From assembly GCA_033442325.1 (NCBI GenBank), contig JAWQFM010000009.1, positions 613,597 to 677,596 on the forward strand: 64,000 nt of DNA, in the 5' to 3' direction. This DNA comes from Salpingoeca rosetta (Eukaryota; Protista; Choanoflagellata). Positions 4,596-7,500 of this stretch are shown here, piece after piece (within the stretch, counting starts at the first letter, position 1; each line of letters begins with the position of its first letter). Under the pieces are notes generated by a model. That model made no database searches. It saw only the letters and a list, made by a program, of their open reading frames with translations, and was not told where the DNA came from. The position numbers were made by a program, and so were the translations under genes.

Positions 4596-7500
4596 ATGGA
4601 CTTCCTTTCTGCGCCGTGGATTGTGCGCACATATGAAGAGGCGGAGGAGGAAGTGATCGCTGGCACGGGCGCCAGACGCGTGCAGCTGGTCTTTGCTGCA
4701 ACGCAGGTGTGTTAGCGTGTTAGCGCCCTTGGCTCGTGCCAGCGGTGTTTGCTCGAGGTTGGGCTTGTTGAAGGGGAGATCAAGTCTTGCGCAGCACACT
4801 CAACACACTCAACACGCTGAACACACTGACAACACTGAACACACACCGAGAACACTGAACACACTGAACACACTGAACTCTGGCAATGGTGCCTCAACGC
4901 ACGCGCGTGCGCACTTGTGTCGCATCCAGGCGTCCAGGCTGCCTGGATCAGATCAAAGGGTCGTGTGCGGTTGTATCAGTGACCAGCACGTCATCGTACC
5001 CGCCGTATTCTCCGAGGAAGCACTTGAACAGCTGCAGGTGCGCATTGAATGCACCTGTGCATGTCCGTACGGGTGGTGGCATCGGCACCTGCGCTGTGTC
5101 TGTTGTGTTTGCTGTGTTTGCTGTGTTTGCTGTGTTTGCTGTGTTTGCTGTGTTTGCTGTTGCATGCCCTTGACGCAGTTGCTGCACCGCCTTCGCGTCT
5201 GCAGGCAGACTCGCAGATGGATGTGGAGCTCGAAGGAGCGCGTGGCTGGCTGCTCCTCTTGAAGAAGTATGTCAAGTACATGTGCGCGCATGTGTCTGTG
5301 TGTGCCTTCATGTGTACGCCTTCATGTGTACGCCCCTGTGTACGCCTCCCGTGTACGTCGATGTGTACGCCTCTGTCTACGCCCCTGTGTACGTCGATGT
5401 GTACGCCTCTGTCTACGCCCCTGTGTACGTCGATGTGTACGTTCGGGAGTCGTCATGGCAACCCCCCTCCCCCTCCCCTCCAAGCCGTGTCACATGACGA
5501 CGTCGCAGTGCAGCCTCACAAAGCTTACTTGGGCGGATTCTCCACCATGCACCAGATACTGGCTGCGTCCAACCCTGGGCTACGACAACGTGTGCTGCGT
5601 GATTGACCTGTTTGAGGTCTGCAGCAGCGACGACCACCTCCTGATTGGATCCCCAACACATTCGCGCAACCACAAGGCGCTCCTGCAAGCCCTGCAGCGC
5701 AAGGCGACGGCGCAACCGGAGAGCATTGCCGACGCCGCCGCCAATGTGCAGGAGTCACAGGCGCCGGACGAGCCCACCTCCCTCGTCGGCCTACTCCAGT
5801 CCCTCTTTGACTTTGAGGAAGCGGCATCGCAGAGCCAGCACTGGCCAATTGACACGCCGCACAGCCAGCACTGGCTCAGTGGCAGTCGCCGCGGCGATAA
5901 TGACGGTGGAGACGCTGCCCAACAGGCGGAGCACCACAAGCGTCTTGATGATGACAGCGACCACAGCGGTTCAGGGCGTGCAACTGGCCACGGCCAAGCT
6001 CATCATGCCACAACTGCGTCCACCAACGATGACAGCAATGTCACGGCCAACAACCCCAACAACAGCAGCAAGAGGAAAGAGGGCAGCGAGAGCGCGACAA
6101 GGTCGCCTGCGCACCAACAGGGCAATGGGATGTCCGCGTCGCTGGCGGCTTGCGATGTCACGCCATGTAGTCAACAATCACAAGACATAACGGTCAGCTC
6201 CCAGGCCTTTGACTTTGCAACGGCCGCCGCCAACTCGCAGCGAAGCCTGTTTGGGGACGTCACGGGGTCCACCTTTACATCACCCAGCACGTGTTCACTC
6301 TGCAGCAAGCGCGCACACATGACCACAAGTGCGCACATGGAGAGCGATGGCGGCACTGGCGATGGTGACGGCAGCCACATGCCGAGCAGTGAAAGCAGCC
6401 ACACCAAGCCAGCAGCAACAGCAACAACAGCAGCAACAGCAGCAGCAGCAGCAACAACAACAACAACAGCAACAGCAACAGCAACAGCAACAACAAGAGC
6501 TGCTGGCGAGCGGCAGGGCATAAGAAGAGCGGTGAAGAGGAAGCGAACCCGAAGAAAGAGGCGCGCAGCACCGCTTGCACTCGATCTCAGCATCGACGAT
6601 GAAACACAGGAGCCAGTGGAAGATGATGCGGGAGGACGCACCATGCCTCCAACCAACTACAAAACACCTGCAGTCACAGCCACAGCGACTGTATCCGCAA
6701 CAAATGGTGCGCGCGTTGTTGTTGACTTTGACACGAGCAGTGGAGATTCGCAGGACTTGCTCGCATCTGGACCGTTGTGGTCACAGTACGGGCACAGTAG
6801 CGGGATTGGTGCCAAGCATTGTGGTGATGGTGATGATGATGATGATGATGATGATGATGATGATGATGATGATGATGATGATGATGATGATGATGATGAT
6901 GATGATGATGATGATGATGATGATGATGATGATGATGATGATGATGATGATGACAAGCCAGGTTATTGTGCAGTGGCTAGCACTGGTGCTGAAAGGGAAA
7001 CTGCTGAGCTGGTGCGCAGGTGCCCTGCCGAACACACGACCTTATGTCAGCCGCTGTCGCCATCGTCATTGCTGCTCCAGTCGTCCGTGGAGTTGTTGTC
7101 ATCATCTCTCTGTCGGTCGCTGTCACCGCCAGCACAAGTCGCTGCACAAGACGCGTCGGCACTCGCTTCCAGGACGCCACCGCAGTCTGCGCCATCAGCG
7201 CACACCGAACCACCACGCAAAGCCCCATCAGCAGCGACTACCTTGTCGTCATCATCGTCGCCATTATCGCGACCCTTGTCACCACGGTCCACCTTGTCAT
7301 TGCCTGTCGCGCGCCGCTTCGTGGGCACAACAGCGGCAAAGCGCCAGCACCGCCAGCGCGAACGACGGCGGGTACCCAGGACTGCGTTGAAGAAGGTGTT
7401 GAACGAGTTTGTGATGCGCAACTATCACATTGGCATGTCATCTGCAATGGCCACGCTTTGCTCCAGTGCCTATCTCCTCACACAGCCGCACCAGCGGTGA
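4596..7500 (+). CDS. TPP1/ACD/Tpz1/Est3-like telomere OB-fold protein with long low-complexity tail
   Basis: Exons 4596-4706, 4930-5037, 5205-5266, 5556-7500 splice to MDFLSAPWI..RVQLV..CGCISDQHVIVPAVFSEEALEQLQ..LEGARGWLLLLKKYWLRP..VCCVIDLFEV..IGSP. This follows the TPP1/Tpz1 motif order PW(I/L)..Q..SD..h..EAL..G.LL.L..VD.F..G.P. An extra 3' exon is possible because the stop lies within a GTGA donor-like sequence. Confidence 0.72.
5311..5441 (+). repeat. Intronic minisatellite, 36-bp unit (gtgtacgtcgatgtgtacgcctctgtctacgcccct) built of 12-bp subunits
   Basis: Units start at 5351, 5387 and 5423. Confidence 0.85.
6832..6954 (+). repeat. Coding (GAT)n tract, about 41 Asp
   Basis: Perfect GAT run, in frame in the TPP1-like CDS. 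Confidence 0.95.

Follow-up and report, generated by a model that had tools for sequence, protein, structure and literature searches.

A probable TPP1/ACD (Tpz1) ortholog, encoded in four exons, in the choanoflagellate Salpingoeca rosetta

Introduction

Within shelterin, TPP1 links two functions, the protection of chromosome ends by POT1 and the recruitment of telomerase. The protein changes quickly in evolution, and outside animals and fungi it is difficult to recognise. In the unicellular opisthokont S. pombe, Tpz1 carries an N-terminal TPP1-type OB fold, followed by the part that binds Pot1 and by a C-terminal region that binds Poz1 and Ccq1. Est3 of S. cerevisiae, a telomerase subunit of ~180 aa that consists of the OB fold only, belongs to the same TPP1 OB family (PF10341/InterPro TPP1-Est3). 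Ciliate TEBP-beta and Tetrahymena Tpt1 are also OB-fold partners of a POT1-type end-binding protein; their C-terminal regions differ and their lineages are more distant.

The layout of TPP1 comprises the OB fold, an adjacent RD region, a variable linker of 50-700 aa and a C-terminal TIN2-interaction motif, the linker being the least conserved part of the protein (Myler et al. 2021, PMC8653790). The same work lists the TPP1 OB family as occurring in animals, in fungi and in further unicellular organisms, and explicitly leaves open the tracing of shelterin in unicellular animal relatives (PMC8653790). As the family is already known so widely, a choanoflagellate ortholog is to be expected; the existence of such a gene is no surprise, and its value lies in annotation and comparison. 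Our literature search found no paper treating TPP1 or shelterin jointly with Salpingoeca.

Here we analysed a window of S. rosetta DNA (the whole stretch under study, 64,000 nt) and describe a gene which, with a probability of roughly 0.78, is the S. rosetta ortholog of TPP1/ACD (Tpz1), single-copy, with four exons and a product of ~741 aa.

Results

A gene of four exons

The + strand of the window carries, at 4596-7500, a four-exon gene with canonical GT-AG borders and a frame that is kept throughout. The first-pass annotation had proposed that three short exons join a long one in frame, and this held: the cumulative phases at the ends of exons 1, 2 and 3 are 0, 0 and 2, respectively. The parts of the gene up to the end of the N-terminal domain are as follows.

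4596..4706, + strand: exon 1; translated as 37 codons from the first ATG; N-terminal PWI and an acidic stretch
4707..4929, + strand: intron 1; 223 nt, GT..CAG, with a 9-nt tandem repeat inside
4930..5037, + strand: exon 2; 36 codons, ISD..V..VFSEEAL, with the Pfam TPP1 match
5038..5204, + strand: intron 2; 167 nt, GT..CAG, containing (GCTGTGTTT)n
5205..5266, + strand: exon 3; 62 nt, ending in phase 2; acidic loop ADSQMDVELE and G.RG.LLLL
5267..5555, + strand: intron 3; 289 nt, or 247 nt with the upstream in-frame acceptor (AG 5512-13)
5556..5655, + strand: start of exon 4, with the last strands of the N-terminal domain (predicted with low confidence); YWLRP..VID.FEV..IGSP, 37% identity to P0001, the relative described below

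The ATG of exon 1, at 4596, is the first after a (CA)n run. The donor of this exon is GTGTGT at 4707; if the frame is continued past it into intron 1, a stop closes it two codons further on. Exon 2 is flanked by CAG before 4930 and by the donor GTGCGC after 5037, and exon 3 by CAG before 5205 and by the donor GTATGT at 5267. None of the three introns has a length divisible by 3, whichever acceptor ends the third; together with the early stop in intron 1, this explains why the domain is absent from any single ORF. Each intron is full of short tandem repeats. There is one set per intron, at 4795-4878 (9-nt), 5093-5160 (9-nt) and 5311-5441 (12/36-nt units). Base composition by codon position follows GC3 > GC1 > GC2 in the exons, as in the coding sequence of the neighbouring GWT1 gene, and is flat in the introns. 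The long ORF of exon 4 is open over 1,942 nt. The predicted spliced product has 741 aa (755 aa with the upstream acceptor), and the gene is present once in the genome.

Exon 4 has two in-frame acceptors 42 nt apart, AG 5512-13 (exon start 5514) and AG 5554-55 (exon start 5556). The in-frame splicing claimed for this junction stood, with the start of the exon corrected from 5514 to 5556 as the more likely of the two. The downstream site is favoured by the position and phase of the intron in the ortholog, by a better pyrimidine tract and by a CTTAC branch-like site. A start at 5514 is kept possible by a 59-nt candidate exon in the ortholog (see below).

A match to the TPP1 family in exon 2

All motifs listed for the protein beforehand were found in the exon translations, namely PWI, ISD..V..VFSEEAL, ADSQMDVELE, G.RG.LLLL, VID.F, IGSP and, at the C-terminus, LKKVLNEFVMRNY. 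The domain, put at about 140 aa in the first-pass annotation, measures ~127 aa up to IGSP and ~145 aa if the next helix is included, in agreement with that estimate. The order and spacing of the motifs parallel those of human TPP1, which we take to be RPWI, LLVSDG.H.V.C.V..EAL, G.RG..GRLLLL and V.D.F, followed by a helix. The first-pass annotation had also placed the acidic loop ADSQMDVELE roughly where the glutamates of the TEL patch lie, the acidic residues that bind the TEN domain of TERT; this equivalence is at most putative. Relative to human TPP1, the TEL-patch positions are presumably kept only in part, with Asp for E84/E171 and Trp for R93/R180. According to Myler et al. (2021, PMC8653790), conservation of these residues does not extend beyond mammals, not even to other vertebrates.

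Each exon was scanned by itself against the complete Pfam set of 24,736 models, with matches considered up to an E value of 10. Exon 2 (36 aa) matched one family alone, PF10341 (TPP1/ACD), with an E value of 0.0084 and a score of 16.4 bits. This is the very family that had been named beforehand as the test of the TPP1 reading, here matched at a sub-threshold score; the cut-off of the family (gathering score) is 26.5 bits, and the score of exon 2 falls below it because the exons were scored one at a time. The alignment places residues 7-35 of the exon on positions 53-81 of the 158-position profile, covering 29 positions. Since 43 residues precede the matched stretch, the initiator Met falls at profile position ~10, which makes the domain N-terminal, as in TPP1.

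As a control we scanned ten ORF pieces, 33-52 aa long and read in other frames of the window; none had a Pfam match below E 0.7. No Pfam match came from exon 1, exon 3 or the beginning of exon 4, each of which was scanned alone and is too short to pass the HMMER filters, and no exon matched the OB families of RPA70N, Stn1, Ten1 or POT1 at Pfam E values up to 10. Neither the three short exons nor a two-sequence profile (A1) matched any PDB sequence at E up to 10, and the ESM Atlas gave no usable match to exon 2 or to the N-terminal piece of exon 4. A six-frame scan of the genome with PF10341 produced no match and missed even this locus, showing that the scan is insensitive. AF2 prediction of the exon 4 fragment alone had a pLDDT of 55, that is, low confidence.

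A syntenic ortholog

A phmmer search with the first 295 non-repetitive residues of exon 4 against 1.84 billion representatives found one relative, P0001 (E 1.7e-6), a protein of 410 aa encoded on a 3.8-kb AT-rich genomic contig, L005, of a Logan read-set assembly (SRR14727191). P0001 and exon 4 are 37% identical over 90 aa. On L005, the similarity begins right after an AG acceptor at 348-349, in phase 2; hence this contig has a phase-2 intron at the site homologous to the window acceptor 5554-55, in the same position and the same phase. In both species the similarity starts directly after the acceptor, so that neither gene can do without an exon upstream. L005 begins within a (GT)n run and the ortholog contig does not include exons 1 and 2. 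At 52-110 it contains a candidate exon of 59 nt, open and bordered by AG and GTATGC, which reads FLLLTCEYHELSSLSLSCS (FLLL...) and which, if real, would give the ortholog the spacing of the longer form of the window gene.

The neighbourhood of the gene is also shared. Downstream of it, and convergent with it, the window has a gene of the GWT1/PIG-W family (8056-10388, - strand; PF06423, 1.7e-61, at 8544-10388). L005 has GWT1 at 2612-3784 (- strand), again convergent and just downstream of the P0001 gene, and its product shares 43% identity with GWT1 of the window. The same tail-to-tail pairing and this degree of identity indicate that P0001 is the syntenic ortholog, from a fairly distant relative. 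Word-index protein searches with exon 4, whole or as residues 1-200, returned no relatives, and the same kind of search with the first 90 residues of P0001 returned only P0001 itself; the protein searches brought up no records of the S. rosetta genome. A metagenome scan with profile A1 gave pattern matches only, none of which was confirmed.

Regions following the domain

Downstream of the N-terminal domain, the long exon encodes the following.

5656..5835, + strand: conserved helical block, kept in P0001 (LLQSLFDFEE in the window, ILSTLFDCHE in the ortholog)
5836..7377, + strand: low-complexity linker of ~500 aa, not conserved with the ortholog
6523..6564, + strand: basic patch RRAVKRKRTRRKRR, NLS-like, with a putative function
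6825..6953, + strand: in-frame (GAT)43 microsatellite, encoding a poly-Asp run of ~45 residues
7378..7482, + strand: predicted C-terminal helix, LKKVLNEFVMRNY..LCSSAYLL, a candidate partner-binding motif
7498..7500, + strand: stop codon of the long-exon translation

The helical block is predicted to form helices at residues 40-52, 55-66 and 76-91, with a low-confidence pLDDT of ~55. It occupies the position of the POT1-binding (RD) region of TPP1, and its role may be the same.

The first-pass annotation had described a long Ser/Thr/Asp-rich linker followed by a short helical C-terminus, and both features were recovered. The linker is ~500 aa long, within the 50-700 aa known for TPP1, and of 505 residues counted in it, 51% are D, S, A or T. 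For the C-terminus, AF2 applied to window positions 7258-7497 predicts one helix, at residues 41-75 (~35 residues, pLDDT 70-81). The C-terminus shows a weak collinear match to that of the ortholog, with an E value of 0.006 in a restricted comparison.

Two Pfam matches in exon 4, to CDC45 and Nop14, were rejected; they lie on the acidic low-complexity run and are hence compositional. A second coding repeat, (CAGCAA)n/(CAA)n at 6413-6500, is translated into a Thr/Ala run; like (GAT)43, it is likely to be polymorphic in length.

Telomere partners in the genome

The profile scan of the genome found POT1 (PF02765) at C4:514680-515330 with 32 bits, and the RNA-binding domain of TERT (Telomerase_RBD) at C5:174387-175177 with 56 bits. 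Both partners expected of a TPP1 protein, POT1 and telomerase, are therefore encoded in the same genome. The POT1 match sits in a stop-free frame of 598 aa, and the POT1 gene is largely intron-free there. TINF2_N, TRF and POT1PC gave no match in the genome scan, which was of a kind that also missed the present locus.

Discussion

The first-pass annotation had read the locus as a TPP1/Tpz1-type subunit. In favour of this reading are the match of exon 2 to PF10341, its N-terminal offset, the order of domain, block, linker and helix, and the presence of POT1 and TERT; the score of the match remains sub-threshold. Like human TPP1 (ACD), the S. rosetta protein has a PF10341-type match in its N-terminal domain, here sub-threshold. 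A predicted helical block next to this domain, a long disordered linker and a candidate short motif at the C-terminus come in the order seen in the human protein, and the genome encodes POT1 and TERT. In contrast to human TPP1, the domain begins at the initiator Met, the linker of ~500 aa includes the 45-residue poly-Asp run, sequence identity is very low, and TIN2 was not detected (in an insensitive scan).

We considered that the gene may instead encode a nuclear protein that is specific to its lineage and mostly disordered. Its small N-terminal domain would then be something other than a TPP1-type OB fold, and exon 2 would resemble the Pfam family by chance. The match is indeed sub-threshold and limited to 29 residues, it finds no echo in the other exons, in PDB sequences or in Atlas clusters, only one relative exists in the databases searched, and, given how many pieces of exon size a 55-Mb genome holds, one of them could reach 16 bits by chance. 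However, the family matched is exactly the one predicted, one among 24,736, the offset of the match suits an N-terminal domain and the architecture downstream of it suits TPP1, and the control ORF pieces were silent. We therefore regard a chance match as unlikely.

It is also conceivable that the protein is an accessory subunit of telomerase of the Est3 kind, which would belong to the same OB family and serve telomerase only, making neither POT1 nor TIN2-type contacts. PF10341 covers the OB folds of both TPP1 and Est3, and a partner of the TIN2/TRFH type was not detected in the insensitive genome scan, both of which would fit such a protein. Est3, however, is small and OB-only (below 200 aa), whereas the S. 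rosetta product reaches ~741 aa; conserved regions follow its domain, and the ~600 extra residues include the conserved helical block and the C-terminal helix. POT1, moreover, is present in the genome. This makes an Est3-like protein very improbable. Little credence is due, too, to an error in the gene model, in which case splicing would not join exons 1-3 to the long ORF, and the latter would stand alone or be a decaying remnant. The junction between exons 3 and 4 is ambiguous, having two in-frame acceptors. Nonetheless, the similarity between the two species starts right after the acceptor in each, so that an upstream exon is required; exon 3 supplies the phase 2 that is needed, the ORF stays open for 1,942 nt, the exons show coding periodicity, and the family signal lies in exon 2.

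If the gene is the ortholog of TPP1/ACD, as we favour, its role as a TPP1/Tpz1-type bridge at telomeres would follow from homology to the family. In the protein, a domain of ~140 aa at the N-terminus, to which all four exons contribute, would be a TPP1/Est3-type OB fold that contacts telomerase, and the helical block that follows would bind POT1 in its C-terminal part. The disordered linker of ~500 aa, with its basic, putatively nuclear-targeting patch, would then tether the domain and the block to the C-terminal helix, which could dock on a bridging partner on the double-strand side, similar to TIN2 or Poz1. More tentatively, the C-terminal helix might bind a TIN2/Poz1-like bridge that has gone unrecognised in choanoflagellates, in which case a full shelterin bridge from single-stranded to double-stranded DNA, with recruitment of telomerase by the TPP1 OB fold, would predate animals; we think this possible rather than probable.

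The gene model provides an entry point to the question of which shelterin contacts (with POT1, with telomerase and with a TIN2-like bridge) predate animals. S. rosetta is a choanoflagellate with working genome editing (PMC7314544), and thus a genetically tractable member of the sister group of animals. If the bridge does predate animals, its single-strand to double-strand connection would be open to genetic dissection in S. rosetta.

The gene is flanked by simple repeats, (CA)n at 4540-4562 and (TG)n at 7511-7592. On its other side from GWT1, 383 bp separate exon 1 from the start of a divergent neighbour gene (3787-4212, - strand), which implies a short promoter region shared by the two genes.
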